Both the position numbers and the translations under genes were made by a program. This document shows positions 44,669 to 56,815 of a DNA stretch of 64,000 nt, piece by piece (the first letter of the stretch is position 1; the number at the start of each line of letters is the position of its first letter). The notes under the pieces were generated by a model. It searched no databases. It was not told where the DNA came from and was given only the letters and a program-made list of their open reading frames with translations. Origin of the DNA: Bugula neritina (Eukaryota; Animalia; Bryozoa); contig OZ037768.1 in the NCBI GenBank assembly GCA_964035545.1, positions 23,407,319 to 23,471,318 of the forward strand, written 5' to 3'.

Positions 44669-47416
<2,748 letters not shown>

Positions 47417-48835: not shown

Positions 48836-51800
48836 TTACTTCTTAAAAAGCCCTTGTTCAACTGGTTTTGTTACCCAGTGCCCATAACCTCTCTCCTTTA
48901 TTAAGTCACGGAAAGTTTTCTTCGCCTCTTCATACTTGTCATTTAATTTCTTAGCTTCTAAGTAGTTGCCCGCCCCAAAGAGATGCTGTTTACCGGATAT
49001 CTTACTCAACTCCCGATACCGGTGCAGGAACCCGGCTTTACACAGTCGACTTGCTCCTGATTCGCCCGTCCTGAACGGTGACCTACAAATGGACAATGTG
49101 AGACTTAAATGAAGGAGAAATGTACTCGTTATATAACCTGGCAAAAATTGCTCAACATTGACATTGACCTGCAATATTAGCTATTGCTGAAATGGAAGCT
49201 CAATATCTACTAATAGAAAAGCAACTCTATGTGTAGATAACATAAAAAAGCTACAATTATGTGTTATCAGCTCCCATATGTTGTCCTCGTAGGAGTTGTG
49301 TTCTATTTTTACAAATATACAAACACCATGATCTCTTCAGCATTAGCAGCTTTAATAAATATTACCAGTAGTGACATATATGTAACTACTTGCAATTGAA
49401 AATTAAAATAAACCTGCAAAGTTTAATTAATTTTGCTACTGTTAATTAAATATTTGTTTTATCAAATCTGAAAAGCAAATTTTTAAAGACATGTTTGTTC
49501 GAAAGCTTCTTGTTAATTTCATTTTTTAAAGAACCTTAATTGTGTAGAATCTTAAGGATATATAAAACAGATATAAACAGATCATTTCCAAATAAACATG
49601 TAGAATGTAGAGGATAATTACGTTTCAATACTTTTCCCAGTCCTGCCATCACATATCTCAATCTTGTCATGATCCAATGACCAGTTCACACTACAACATA
49701 GCACAGTTTGTATAATTGAATTGAACTTTGACAGATTATATTATTTACAGTTCTAGCTATCTCAACATAATTGTAAATATTACTTAGCAACAGCCTTAAT
49801 ACATAACACTCGGGAGGGGTGGGGGTGTGTTCCCTTCCCTAATGATCAGTATACCATCAGCAAGATTCGACTATCAATATAACTACAGGTGAAATTGTAT
49901 TTACAGTTACACTACGTGATAGTCTGCAGTACGTGATAGTCTGCAGTACGTGATAGTCTGCACTACGTGATAGTCTGTATTACGTGATAGTCTGCAGTAC
50001 GTGATAGTCTGCACTACGTGATAGTCTGCAGTACGTGATAGTCTGCAGTACGTGATAGTCTGTAGTACGTGATAGTCTGCAGTACGTGATAGTCTGTAGT
50101 ACGTGATAGTCTGTAGTACGTACCAGACTGAGTACTTACCATAGAGTGTTGGTTTTCTCACAGCCCCGAGGCGCGTCATACAGTGTAACTCTGCCTAGAT
50201 AAGGGTGGTTCAGCATGTACCCCTCCGGCAGCAGGGTGTTCACAACTTCAGGCATGCGGCAGCATACAGCTCGAGACAAATGGCCGTGATCAAACAGATT
50301 GCCTTAAAATAGAACAGACAGTCTTAAAATTATCTTGAAATATTATTAAAGCAATGAGCCAGCCGACGTCATGAAAATCTTAACCAGAGAGATAAATATT
50401 ATGCAGGAAAAATGGAACACACTGTGTCAATATTTCCTTACTAGCAGATGCCTGCATAGCAAAATATTGTAGCAGGGGAGTACAATACTCACACTCACAA
50501 ATCAGTTATAAAAACAGACCTCAATTGATACTCGCATCTTTCTAATTAATATATATAACCATGTATACTACAGCCAATTACATATCTTGACTCATCTACT
50601 TAGAGTTATCTACTCACGTTGACATCTGAGCTAATCATAGTATTACAGTGACAGTACAAAGAGTTGCCCTCTCCTATCACTGCTGGAGTAGAATACAAGT
50701 GTGAACCTACCGAGAGTAACCGAAGTGATGTACACGGGTTCTATGAAGTGAGACAGCAGGCAGCCCTGAACACCCAGCACATTCCACCTCAGTATCTTGT
50801 CACTGCAAGACATGGTCCTCAGTCTTTTCCCTTGAATAATACCGTCCCACGTCTGAACATATTCCTGGTTCTTCTCTAGTGGAATAGTTCCTTCACCTGT
50901 GAGTAATGTAATACATATACTAGAATACGTATGCTACAATACATATACTAGAATACGTATGCTACAATACATATACTATGACACATATACTATAATAAAT
51001 ATATTATAACATACATACAGTATAATACAGTAGTCAGGGTCTAGGGGTCAGAGCTTTAGCTTAGTAATCACGGAGTCAAGGTTCTAACCCCGACAAAGGT
51101 CATTGGTGATGTTAGGAAGAGCATCCAGTCATAATTGCTCCTATGCCTCATCTGAATAAGTCCTTGGCCAAACTTAAAAACACCCTTTCCATCAGAGATC
51201 CCCAAAGAGATGGTGACTATAAACTTGTGTGACCGTTTCGCGAGTTTATAATACGAGTACATTAAGCTATATATATATATATAACTCACCAGTCTCTATC
51301 TTAGTGCGGAGATTGCCGTGAGCGTCACTCGTAAACGTCGGCAGATGAACTCCATTCTCGATTCTCTCCACTCCTTCCTCCCCCAGCAGCACCAACTCTC
51401 TACAGAAAGTCATGTGACTGTGAAGTGAATCATGTGATTTATGAATGCACGGCACAGAATACAACATTTGACAGAGAGAGAGAGAGAGAAAGACAGGGTA
51501 AAACTCCAAGGTAGGACTTGAGAAAATAAATAGAGTTTGAAAACAGGAAATAAACAAATCATTGCAAAGAATTTGACAAGTTTAAAAACTCGTTTGTAAG
51601 TAAAACTGCAAGAACCATTTTTATTACGTAATCTTCTAGTTTGGAAAAATAAAACTTAAAACGGCAAAGTTTTACAGTGACCTTCGAAGCAATTTTCATA
51701 AGTTGAATTTTTTTGATTTTTCAACAAAAAACTGCTTTTAATAAGAATTCTCCTCTTGATATTACAGTGTCTCAATGTAGCAAAAGGGCCAAACTATTAT

Positions 51801-54800
51801 ATAGCTAGTTCTATTCACACCCACACTATTGTAGATTATTAATAGTCTCGCAGTTTAATAGCTACACCATGAGCTCTACACAAACTATTAATATACTAGT
51901 ATACCTGTCTAATATTAACACCCGTGAGCTCTACACAAACTATTAATATACTATTATACCTGTCGCTAACAAAAGGGGAATATCCCTCATCTTCTGTGAT
52001 ATATTCGTGAAGTTCACTGAAATAGAATAGTGAACTGGCATGTAACGCAAACTTTAACAGGAAACACAAAACAGGAAACAGTTAACTGCGACAGAGTAAA
52101 AGCAGAGCAGAGCTAAATACAGAGACGTATTGCAAGTATGGTGGTGTTATAAAGTTTAACGGGCATGCACAATGTGGACAGACAGATGACCTTACACTGA
52201 CCTTGGGCTGAAGAGTGCTCCGTCTCCACAGGGTGCTGTGCTAATATAATGGTGGATAGAGATGTCGGGGTGGAGGGAGAGAAGACCAGGGGTGCAAGGG
52301 GACTCAACAAATATAGACGCATTTCCTTGATAGAAGTTCTTAGCCTCACTGTAGAAATACCTGACAACAAGCACAGCGGGTGGGGTACACATTTAGTCCA
52401 ATGCCCCACTAAGATATGCAGCAAAAACTACTACACAATATTGTAGTGGAATTATCAAAGTTTTCACTTTGTACTATTCCTCCAACTTTCGCAGACAAGC
52501 TGTGACTACAGCAGTCATACCTCTTAAATACAGCCACTTGGCGAAACCCTGTGCTACTTCACAGGTTTATGAAATATTTTCCTTTTTTTAATAATATTTG
52601 ACGCAATTAGTTGCATCGTGTTATTTCACGATTGCCACAAAATATTGTTAGTTTTAAAGTTTCATGTTATCCTAACATATATGAGTATTAGTTTTGCATA
52701 TTAGTGACTTGTTTATTGGTTTGTCATTGCTTGTAGATTTGACAGTGTAAAGTTCTAGTGATGTCTAAGATCAGTTGTAAGCCAAGATTAAATGTAAATA
52801 AAAATAACACGGCTAAACACCAACTCCGTTCCCTATAAGTATAAAAGACCGATTGTGTTGGTAAATAAGGCGTTGAGATTCCAACTGATCAGATTCCCGA
52901 AAAGCTGACAGTCATTTTGAGTTTCAGTCAAATGAAAAAGTGTTATGCATATACATTACACTACAAAATGGTGTCCATAAACATATGGAAAAGTAATAGT
53001 TCAAAGTGCTGCATGGAAATGGTCACCTAGTAATAGTCAGAACTCACTTGACCAAAGCTCTGCGGGCAATAACTTCAGCATGACTATCATTTATCACACG
53101 GCCATCCATACTCAGCCCGTCTCCATTGATACACGTATTGCCAGTTCCTAAGGCTACGACCTCGCCTAGTTCTTCGTCTACAGTCACATTACAAGGTCAT
53201 TACACAACATATGTGTAATATAATATATAACATACACATAATACGGTATAGAGTGCATAATATAACATCTATGTAATAAATATATAGTACTAGAATATGC
53301 ATGTAATATAATATATAGTATACAATATAATATCACATGCAATATAGATATCACAAAACAATCATGCAGTATTCAGACTGATTTCAACATTTGCTGACCT
53401 TTCTGAAGGACAAATGCGGACATGACCTTACGACCCGCAAGGTACTCTGGGACACCCTGCAGGAGCTTGTAGAGTTTGTGGTGAGCACACGACGCTACTT
53501 TGTCAAAGTGGGTCGCTTCTTCCTCGGGCATCTGCGGCTACAAGTATAGAGTAAGCAGTCTCAGTGCATGTGTACCGAGTGGAGTAGGACAACCTGAGGG
53601 TATATAATGAGGGTACTAGAGGGTATATAATGAGGGTACTAGAGGGTATATAATGAGGGTACTAGAGGGTATATAATGAGGGTACTAGAGGGTATATAAT
53701 GAGGGTACTAGAGGGTATATAATGAGGGTACTAGAGGGTATATAATGAGGGTACTAGAGGGTATATAATGAGGGTATTAGAGGGTATATAATGAGGGTAC
53801 TAGAGGGTATATAATGAGGGTATTAGAGGGTATATAATGAGGGTATTAGAGGGTATATAATGAGGGTACTAGAGGGTATATAATGAGGGTACTAGAGGGT
53901 TTTGTAGTCGCTAAAGGTCTCCACAATCTATAAATCACTTAACAACTTATACAAGAGTTGAATGTACTAATATTAAGTAAAGCAAAAAATAAATCACTAC
54001 AAGTTACTTTTATTATAAGAATGACATTACTAATCACCACCTCTTAATCTATGTTTCATAGGGACACTCTGCCCTCCCCCCCCCCCCCAGTTCACTAAGG
54101 CTACTAGAAACTGCTTTATATAACAAACAGCAGCTAACAGAGTAGAATAAAGTGGATAATTCAGAACTTACAGCGTCGAGTTGCATGAGAAACTGGACAG
54201 CGTTATCCGCTGCCAACCTCTTGGCCTCTTTCTTAGTCTTGCCGGGTGCCTGTGCTATGGGCTGCTCTTCATTGTTCACACAGATAGAAGCTATGAATCT
54301 GCAGGAGAGAATAACTCTTGATAGTATTAAATAGATGAGTCACAGCTCTGTGTTGGGAAAACCCGTCTATTAGACATGATATTCAGGTGGAAAACCCGTC
54401 TACTAGACTTTATGTTGAGCAGTTGCCTACCCGTCAGGTCCCGCCACGTCGCTGGCTGATATGGTGAACGGCATTCTCTTCTTCTGACAGAATTCTTGAA
54501 GCACTGAGATGGGGTTTCGAGTTAGAGCACCGGCAGCGGTCAGCACCTACAGTATTAAAGTCAGCGTAAAGTCAACATCTGAAGTGGTAGTCAGTGCACA
54601 GTCAACACCTGCAGTATCAGCATACAGTCAACACCTGAAATTGACACACCTTGTTGTTGGACTCTTCACGGTCCATAGTTGTGACGACTTTGACACCAGA
54701 ATCAGAGTTGTCAGAATTCAACACAATCTTCCGACCCAAAGCGTCGTAGAGGACTTTTGATGCGTCTGAAAACAGCAGGAGGGTGCAACTAACAACATGA

Positions 54801-56815
54801 CAAAATGTAAGTTACATACAAGGTAAGTGTGTTTAATTATAAGGTACATAACACAGAATAAAACATACTGTTACTTCTACATACCGGCTGTGACTTACTC
54901 CTACAAGGTAAGTATTACTTACACACGTACTGTGACTTACTCCTACAAGGTAAGTATTACTTACACACGTACTGTGACTTACTCCTACAAGATAAGTATT
55001 ACCTACACAGCTGCTGTGACTTACTCCTAAAAGGTAAGTATTACTCCCACACGTACTGTGACTTACTCCTACAGGGTAAGTATTACCTACACACCTGGCT
55101 CATCATCCACTTCAAGATTCAGTAACTCAGTGAATGCATTTTTAGCAGCGTTGGTTTTGGCTTCTTTCTTAGTTTTGCCTTGACCTTGAGGAAACTCCTG
55201 CCCATCCACCGTGCAGGAGCAGGCAAATCTAAACCAACATCATTATAATAAATAAAGGAAAATAAGTGTATAATATTAATTATAAAGATACAGGGAGCAG
55301 CCGTGTTCTAGGGGTTAGAGCATTTGCATAGTAAGTACGAAGGTCATGGGTTTGAACCCCGACAAAGGCTATTGGTGATGTTAGGAAGAGCATCCAGTCA
55401 AAATTGCTCCTGTGCCCCACCCAAAATTCAACAAACCCCTTTTCAGATCTGGGTTTCTCAAGGTATATTGAGTTATTAGTTATACAGATACATTTTACAA
55501 TGGAGATTGATGGAGACGTCTGCGGAAGTGACGTGATGCACCCACCTCATGCCAAGCGCGGGGTTAATTGGAGCACACTCCTGGAAGGTGGTGGCCAGTC
55601 TGCTCATTGCCGAGTACTCCATCAGGGCGCTCACCGGGTTCTTCTCGCCGTCTATGAACCCCTGTATCAGCTCCGGGGGGATCTTCTTGGGGCGGTGGGT
55701 CTTGAGGGTCTGTGATACGACTTGCTGCATGGCTGAATACACATCAACATGTGCTAAACTTCCCCTACACTGATATAACTATAGTGCTATACTTGTAGGA
55801 CATGTGCTAAACTTCCCCTCCACTGATATAACTATAGTGCTATACTTCTAGGACATGTGCTAAACTACCCCTACACTGATATAACTATAGTGCTATACTT
55901 GTAAGACATGTGCTAAACTTCCCCTACACTGATATAACTATAGTGCTATACTTGTAGGACATGTGCTAAACTACCCCTACACTGATATAACTATAGTGCT
56001 ATACTTGTAGGACATGTGCTAAACTTCCCCTCCACTGATATAACTATAGTGCTATACTTGTAGGACATGTGCTAAACTACCCCTACACTGATATAACTAT
56101 AGTGCTATACTTGTAGGACATGTGCTAAACTTCCCCTACACTGATATAACTATAGTGATATACTTGTAGGACATGTGCTAAACTTCCCCTACACTGATAT
56201 AACTATAGTGCTACACTTGTAGGACATGTGTTAAACTACCCCTACACTGATATAACTATAGTGCTATACTTGTAGGACATGTGCTAAACTACCTCTACAC
56301 TGATATAACTATAGTGCTATACTTGTAGGACATGTGCTAAACTACCTCTACACTGATATAACTATAGTGCTATACTTGTAGGACATGTGCTAAACTTCCC
56401 CTATACTGATATAACTATAGTGCTATTCATACTCTGGTTTACCTGCGACCAACATACCTGCCCGTTCCGACTTTTTCACAGGCCGACTGAGACTCTCGCT
56501 GGCATCTCCGGCTGCTTGAGTCACATGACCCACTGGTGGCCCGACAACCGGCTCCTGGTAAGACTGGAGAGCAGCAGAACCTAGGATTATAGCAATATTA
56601 TACACTACCAGCCACTGAAGTGTTGTCCTCCATTCAACTAAATATACGCCTGCTTTCGTATATATAAATTGCAGATCTTTCCCAAGTGTTGAGAAATAGT
56701 TTATATATATTTGAATCAAACCTTTTTTTGTTGTTCTCCTTGTCTGAGAAGTACCGAGACTTGGGAAGTCATCATTTTCCAGTAAGTTTTGATTCGGGGC
56801 TCCAGTACGCCACAT
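48836..56815 (-). CDS. ADAD/ADAR-family dsRNA adenosine deaminase: 2 dsRBDs + deaminase domain (~699 aa, 15 coding exons)
   Basis: Exons 56815-56722, 56580-56458, 55732-55546, 55228-55095, 54765-54650, 54546-54431, 54298-54172, 53537-53399, 53177-53048, 52360-52202, 51399-51290, 50896-50711, 50302-50140, 49690-49622, 49082-48836 (2100 nt, open). dsRBD1 NPVSALME...GKTKKEAK, dsRBD2 NPISVLQE...GKTKKEAK; deaminase [59 protein letters not shown] and SPFRTG..ASRLCK resemble recalled ADAD1 signatures; no Z-alpha domain seen. Confidence 0.92.
49911..50122. repeat. 17-bp intronic minisatellite (~12 copies)
   Basis: Unit GTACGTGATAGTCTGCA next to the donor at 50139. Confidence 0.95.
51030..51235 (+). 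mobile_element. tRNA-derived SINE family copy
   Basis: A-box-like GGTCTAGGGGT, B-box-like GGTTCTAACCC, core TTGGTGATGTTAGGAAGAGCATCCAGTCATAATTGCTCC, tail GTGACTATAAACTTG shared with the 61119 copy. Confidence 0.8.
53597..53900. repeat. 23-bp intronic minisatellite (~13 copies)
   Basis: Unit GAGGGTATATAATGAGGGTACTA, near-identical copies. Confidence 0.95.
54888..55093. repeat. 42-bp intronic minisatellite (~5 copies)
   Basis: Unit TGTGACTTACTCCTACAAGGTAAGTATTACTTACACACGTAC, running right up to the donor at 55094. Confidence 0.9.
55297..55460 (+). mobile_element. tRNA-derived SINE family copy
   Basis: GCAGCCGTGTTCTAGGGGTTAGAGC..GGTCATGGGTTTGAACCCC head plus shared core TTGGTGATGTTAGGAAGAGCATCCAGTC. 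Confidence 0.85.
55748..56425. repeat. 53-bp intronic minisatellite (~13 copies)
   Basis: Unit ACATGTGCTAAACTWCCCCTACACTGATATAACTATAGTGCTATACTTGTAGG; occupies almost all of intron 55733-56457; no unique spacers. Confidence 0.95.

Follow-up and report, generated by a model that had tools for sequence, protein, structure and literature searches.

An ADAD orthologue with an intact ADAR-type active site in the bryozoan Bugula neritina

Gene structure and transcript support

The 64,000-nucleotide stretch of Bugula neritina DNA analysed here, referred to as the window (contig OZ037768.1, positions 23,407,319 to 23,471,318), carries on its minus strand, at 48836–56815, an ADAD gene of 16 coding exons. 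[quoted passage not shown] B. neritina, or a cryptic sibling species, has this one ADAD orthologue, whose protein, judged by the residues that it conserves, probably works as a third RNA-editing enzyme beside ADAR1 and ADAR2.

The gene model admits only GT-AG introns and forms a single open frame from the ATG at 56815 to the stop codon at 48836. The completed 718-residue model is 98% identical to the public B. neritina protein EB796_003909, with 13 positions that differ, and on sequence the window is assigned to this cheilostome bryozoan or to a cryptic sibling. Exon 1 (56722–56815), which carries the start codon and lies beyond the stretch compared with RNA, and exon 2 (56458–56580) were placed by the splice model and the public protein. 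Exon 3 (55546–55732) encodes the ADAD-type PKKIP motif and the first half of the first dsRBD, and exon 4 (55095–55228) the second half with its KKxAK motif (Pfam dsrm, E 3e-10). Exon 5 (54650–54765) encodes a linker with a motif common to invertebrate ADADs, and the two halves of the second dsRBD, again with KKxAK in the second half, fall in exons 6 (54431–54546) and 7 (54172–54298), both of which are supported by Pfam and by RNA contigs.

The deaminase domain begins in exon 8 (53399–53537; K336 and V337), whose 3' end is an ADAD-specific intron at residue 346, phase 1. Exon 9 (53048–53177) encodes N359 and T360, the zinc ligand H378, the catalytic E380, and the inositol hexakisphosphate (IP6) contacts R384 and R385, and exon 10 (52202–52360) encodes the zinc ligand C433. 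Exon 11, a 57-nucleotide exon at 52016–51960 that was identified by alignment to EB796_003909, encodes a 19-residue acidic insert in the 5' binding loop, where confidence in the structure model is low. Exon 12 (51290–51399) contributes H479 of a second zinc site, R492, K494, and the first half of the base-flipping loop. This loop is interrupted by a phase-1 intron (51290/50896) and resumes with E499 in exon 13 (50711–50896), which also encodes the TWDG helix, R522, the zinc ligand C528, K531, R534, and W535. The remaining residues of the second zinc site (C573, C574, and H592) are in exon 14 (50140–50302), together with R605 and K609. Exon 15 (49622–49690) ends at the other ADAD-specific intron, at residue 637, phase 2, and the coding part of exon 16 (48836–49082) holds the ADAD signature SPF insert, the IP6 contacts K652, Y677, K681, Y687, K691, W706, and K709, and the stop codon.

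The zinc and catalytic motifs, flipping loop, and two KKxAK dsRBDs listed in a preliminary description of the locus are all in place on the minus strand. Six-frame translation puts KKxAK at 55170–55156 and 54234–54220, H-A-E at 53082–53074, P-C-G at 52233–52225, S-C-S-D-K at 50810–50796, SPFRTG at 49081–49064, RLCK at 49048–49037, and W..KP at 48877–48863. The Pfam families dsrm and A_deamin were matched in exon-by-exon searches.

Contigs from four RNA studies were compared with the genome over 5,951 bases, a stretch that has introns 1–5 outside it. Contigs of the four studies (for intron 9, of three of them) lack introns 6–15, the small exon 11 is present, and two letters beside the junction of intron 14 differ from the genome. 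Introns 1–5 are supported by the public gene model and by positions common with Watersipora. Because 34 of the 36 listed coding differences between the RNA, which comes from other populations, and the genome are synonymous and two are replacements, the gene is under purifying selection as well as expressed. Editing was rejected as the source of these differences, which comprise all substitution types, are mostly synonymous, and are fixed in contigs of several studies; they represent population or cryptic-species divergence.

Orthology and the other deaminase genes

Databases were queried with single exons or with proteins retrieved from them, and the joined model served only for local alignments and trees. 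With the last exon as query, ADADs were returned first. The nearest full-length relatives are proteins of Watersipora (66% identity), Lingula (52%, named ADAD1 by NCBI), and Owenia (50%). In a maximum likelihood tree of 58 deaminase domains, rooted on invertebrate ADAR2 and including no ADAT outgroup, ADAD2, or vertebrate ADAR2, the Bugula protein belongs to a clade of 31 members that also holds vertebrate ADAD1 and the mollusc, amphioxus, hemichordate, and echinoderm ADADs (support 100/100).

With vertebrate ADAD1 (TENR) and ADAD2, represented in our comparison set by ADAD1-type proteins only, the Bugula gene shares this clade, introns at residues 346, 389, 560, and 637, a PKK/NPVS motif before the first dsRBD, the SPF insert before SRLCK, and the IP6 contacts. 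Of these, the residue 346 (phase 1) and residue 637 (phase 2) introns recur in ADAD1 of python and smelt and in amphioxus, Lingula, and Watersipora, and the residue 637 intron also in Owenia. The ADAR1 intron pattern used for comparison, with introns at 358 and 642 in their place, comes from ADAR1 of Lottia and the ADAR1-type gene of the Bugula genome itself. The Bugula protein matches 27 of 36 ADAD-diagnostic columns, does not group with ADAR2, and matches neither T375, K376, and R455 nor the HPNR loop of ADAR2 and ADAR3. The assignment to ADAD in the preliminary description, which proposed a deaminase-domain phylogeny with ADAR1 and ADAR2, is thus borne out by tree, introns, and diagnostic columns alike.

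Some observations point instead to an ordinary ADAR1 (or ADAR2), or to a chimera that acquired an ADAR1 core by gene conversion. Core residues 479–600 are 68% identical to scallop ADAR1 versus 63–65% to the Owenia and Lingula ADADs, the best match of the public Bugula orthologue in the PDB is ADAR1, and the proteins of Bugula and Watersipora carry the label ADAR or ADAR-like in public databases. These points weigh against ADAD orthology. However, identity of the core to the resident ADAR1 is only 55%, and a tree in which the Bugula protein and its three intact relatives (described below) were constrained to group with ADAR1 was rejected (approximately unbiased (AU) test, p=0.0004). When the tree was split, the catalytic core alone and the flanks alone each grouped with ADADs (Shimodaira–Hasegawa-like approximate likelihood ratio test (SH-aLRT), 99), and the chimera is therefore excluded. 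An ordinary ADAR orthologue is likewise rejected by the 100/100 clade, the AU test, and the introns, confined to ADADs, at either end of the domain, and the genome has its own ADAR1-type gene (with ADAR1 introns and second zinc site) and ADAR2-type gene. We consider an ADAR1, ADAR2, or chimeric identity very improbable.

Besides the ADAD gene, the genome has four A_deamin loci. The ADAR1-type gene (C2:5,143,700–5,154,430, about 5.15 Mb) has ADAR1 introns, the second zinc site, and at least four dsRBD starts; it forms a long branch at the base of the ADAR1-plus-ADAD side of the tree, where its position is loose. The ADAR2-type gene (C7:3.34 Mb) falls in the ADAR2 clade (100/98). Its splice model, made without RNA, has glutamine where human ADAR2 has E488 (loop T-G-Q-G-T, C7 at about 3,340,290, minus strand), which is the engineered hyperactive E488Q change of PDB 5ED1. 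The third locus is an ADAT1 gene on C4, and the fourth an intronless ADAT1-like gene on a contaminant contig of 27% GC (C160:32084–32617). The in-frame stops of the latter are only TAA or TAG, one of them at the H-A-E position, and it is probably a gene of a ciliate contaminant with reassigned stop codons, not a pseudogene. A second, degenerate ADAD was searched for in the genome and was not found. ADAR1 and ADAR2 are thus encoded separately from the ADAD, as the preliminary description supposed. Its remark that the gene lacks a Z-alpha domain also holds but is uninformative: a Pfam z-alpha search found none across the whole genome, so this absence does not separate the ADAD gene from ADAR1. 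Both canonical ADARs have long branches (1.0–1.2), and the ADAD is slow-evolving.

The active site and its decay among ADADs

The residues were compared with human ADAR2 and ADAR1 in the numbering of those enzymes (Table 1 of PMC10278661; PMC7550611). All four zinc and catalytic residues (H378, E380, C433, and C528) are present, as are 12 of 12 scored IP6 contacts; one further IP6 position listed in PMC10278661, S531, is cysteine in the Bugula ADAD, and active ADARs differ from one another at it. ADAR1's second zinc site (H988, C1081, C1082, and H1103) is kept in full as H479, C573, C574, and H592. Because most invertebrate ADADs have it, this site is ancestral to ADAR1 plus ADAD. The TWDG dimerisation helix is retained (4/4). 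The set of base-flipping and RNA-contact residues is present at 11 of 12 positions, the exception being ADAR2 K376/ADAR1 R892, which is Thr360. The active-site motifs named in the preliminary description are confirmed; this position was not among them. The basic residue is replaced by threonine in Bugula, Watersipora, and Owenia and by leucine in Lingula, and P0110, an ADAR1-side protein in our set, likewise lacks it.

Structure prediction and the PDB search were performed on the public Bugula orthologue (P0078). The AlphaFold model has a predicted local distance difference test score of 89, with human ADAR1 (9B83) as best match (E 9e-42, template modelling score 0.83–0.91), and the deaminase domain apart from the insert is predicted to fold as an ADAR domain. 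The 19-residue insert, which is present only in the two bryozoans, is poorly ordered in the model. ADAR1 is also the nearest active enzyme in its residues, sharing the catalytic, IP6, flipping-loop, and second-zinc residues (PMC7550611) as well as N at 375 and A at 455. It differs in clade and intron pattern, in having R892 where the Bugula ADAD has threonine, and in that the Bugula protein has no Z-alpha domain and carries the SPF insert.

ADADs have been called catalytically inactive (PMC9989829, PMC7360552, and PMC10278661), and the Bugula protein departs from the published description of the family (PMC9989829, PMC7360552) in having intact catalytic residues and two dsRBDs, not one. By orthology it is an ADAD, but it does not fit the functional definition of that family. 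Expression restricted to the germline is a further part of the published description; the RNA contigs compared here carry coded sample names. Vertebrate ADADs, in which three of the four zinc-site residues are mutated (PMC7360552), differ from it in having one dsRBD, one of four catalytic residues, 0–1 of 12 flipping and RNA contacts, and no second zinc site. Mollusc ADADs, including the squid ADAR/D-like protein, share its clade, the second zinc site, and two dsRBDs (abalone, mussel, and squid), and a single dsRBD therefore does not define the lineage. The catalytic glutamate, however, is lost in all six mollusc ADADs sampled, most of which also lack the histidine or a cysteine.

Proteins of Lingula, Owenia, and Watersipora (P0001, P0077, and P0079) resemble the Bugula ADAD in having an intact site, two dsRBDs, and no basic residue at 376; the Lingula protein also lacks R590. 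In Owenia P0077, a 6-residue insert lies just before G-E-G-T and may be a gene-model artefact at an intron there. These four ADADs, from three phyla, retain 10–11 of the 12 flipping and RNA contacts, and the other 27 sampled ADADs retain 0–5. The amphioxus ADAD and three others (among P0005, P0086, P0055, P0088, and P0095) keep the four zinc and catalytic residues with the flipping loop lost, an intermediate state that is not reported in the literature consulted. Since zinc residues can outlast the flipping loop in this way and nearly all ADADs retain the IP6 contacts, zinc and IP6 motifs, on which the preliminary description chiefly relied, do not by themselves indicate activity. The RNA-engaging surface decays once catalysis is lost; it is undecayed in the Bugula ADAD, and its persistence in Bryozoa, Brachiopoda, and Annelida is a stronger sign of activity than those motifs.

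Orthologues of ADAD in lophotrochozoans were already known (PMC6651903, PMC9989829). Alignment file 1 of PMC6651903 shows degenerate ADADs for Phoronis, Capitella, and Notospermus and an intact one for Lingula, which implies repeated loss inside Lophotrochozoa if all are one orthologue. A different history, in which two early paralogues arose, an active one now in bryozoans, brachiopods, and oweniids and an inactive one in molluscs and deuterostomes, would account for the grouping of the 27 degenerate ADADs apart from the four intact ones, against the species tree (94/97 in the full tree, 95 and 93 in the split trees). Fast-evolving degenerate sequences can attract each other, however, and monophyly of the protostome-type ADADs is not rejected (AU p=0.11). 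Moreover, no species was seen with both kinds: Bugula and Lingula have only the intact one, and Phoronis, Capitella, and Notospermus only a degenerate one. We regard the two-paralogue history as improbable; it concerns history only and is compatible with the chemistry of an active enzyme.

Predicted activity and its significance

We favour, at a probability of about 65%, the reading that the Bugula ADAD is a working double-stranded RNA (dsRNA) adenosine deaminase with a preference for long duplexes and that the ancestral ADAD was active and was inactivated repeatedly. The competence proposed in the preliminary description is, as a prediction, well founded in the conserved residues and in the comparison with the other ADADs. 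By homology with ADAR1 and ADAR2 structures, the two dsRBDs would hold A-form duplex RNA, and the G498-E499-G500 loop would enter the minor groove and flip the target adenosine into the pocket. There, zinc (bound by H378, C433, and C528) and E380 would activate water, with E380 shuttling a proton, to convert adenosine to inosine. IP6 would organise the core, the second zinc would anchor the 5' binding loop, as it does in ADAR1, and the TWDG helix would permit ADAR-type dimers. T360, in place of a basic residue, probably weakens the grip beside the flipped base and would bias activity toward long regular duplexes, such as repeat-derived RNA, over short imperfect recoding sites. Catalysis would have been lost several times independently from an active bilaterian ancestor.

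Several points weigh against activity. Thr360 is one of them: the R892H form of human ADAR1 edits short imperfect duplexes less, with long duplexes still edited (bioRxiv 10.1101/2025.01.02.631069), and in a mutational scan of ADAR2 most substitutions of K376 were harmful (PMC8809894), although the changes in the human enzymes are harmful, not abolishing. The only invertebrate ADAD-like protein to have been assayed, that of squid, is inactive in vitro, but it lacks the glutamate and two cysteines (PMC10278661). Only four species with an intact site are in the sample, and a single alignment underlies the scoring of the residue sets. A competitor that binds dsRNA could also keep its RNA contacts, and ADAR3 (ADARB2) keeps all catalytic residues and yet is inactive (PMC7360552, PMC11120146).

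As the principal alternative, the Bugula ADAD might be a pseudo-enzyme like ADAR3, with a structurally complete site that binds or flips dsRNA with little or no turnover, and act as a competitor, a dimer partner, or a germ-granule RNA-binding protein like vertebrate ADADs. Besides the ADAR3 precedent of a full catalytic set in a non-canonical family member, the replaced basic residue (T360 in both bryozoans and Owenia, leucine in Lingula) and the in vitro inhibition of ADAR2 by squid ADAR/D-like (PMC10278661) fit such a role, as does the survival of ADAD function after loss of catalysis in most lineages, from which it follows that catalysis is not the core role of ADAD. Yet E380, E499, and K494, which serve catalysis only, are kept over three phyla and lost in other ADADs, and the ADAR1-side P0110 also lacks the basic residue. 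Furthermore, ADAR3 is a vertebrate-only member of the ADAR2 lineage whose main brakes, at the equivalents of V351, I446, and R510, are absent from the Bugula ADAD: of the four restraining positions (PMC11120146), three have the active-state residue (V337, I428, and R522), and the fourth varies among ADAR1s. A pseudo-enzyme of this kind seems unlikely, though far from negligible.

The surroundings of the gene may be noted here. Copies of a highly abundant interspersed repeat with the look of a short interspersed nuclear element lie at 51040–51230 in intron 12, with very deep RNA contig coverage, and at 55290–55460 in intron 3; repeats of this type are likely sources of dsRNA substrates. Intronic tandem repeats were seen by eye at 49910–50120 and 53595–53900 (units of about 20–25 nucleotides), 54870–55090 (44-nucleotide unit), and 55740–56430 (51-nucleotide unit). 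Downstream and convergent with the ADAD gene is a proteasome alpha subunit gene (45750–47413, plus strand), and an L7Ae/NHP2-like gene begins at about 58279 (plus strand), head to head and about 1.5 kb upstream. The order proteasome alpha, ADAD, L7Ae-family gene is the same in Watersipora.

The sequences are not in themselves new, being publicly available. As the preliminary description had suspected, intact orthologues from Watersipora, Owenia, and Lingula are in databases, and Lingula stands in the 2019 alignment of PMC6651903, the consulted part of which does not comment on its active site. In the consulted part of Table S2 of PMC9989829, the ADADs inspected are degenerate or partial and no amphioxus ADAD is listed. 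A literature search, which had most subscription journals outside it, found no description of an intact ADAD.

A broader proposal, which we hold tentatively and at slightly less than even odds, is that ADAD constitutes a third active lineage of adenosine-to-inosine editases, one that would still act on dsRNA in bryozoans, brachiopods, and basal annelids by substrate rules of its own (threonine at 376, ADAD-specific loops). It might act in the germline or be a main editor of Bugula, in which both ADAR1 and ADAR2 have long branches, and the mammalian testis ADADs would be one of several independent dead derivatives. Living intact ADADs make an editing-enzyme origin of the lineage directly testable, and the graded series among ADADs (intact; zinc kept with the flipping loop lost; all lost) lends itself to the study of how pseudo-enzymes arise repeatedly while the gene is kept. 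A compact natural deaminase of 718 amino acids outside ADAR1 and ADAR2 may be of use in RNA-editing tool work. If the Bugula ADAD is active, the attribution of editing to enzymes in bryozoans, brachiopods, and annelids would change, with a bearing on the original role of the fertility-essential mammalian ADADs.

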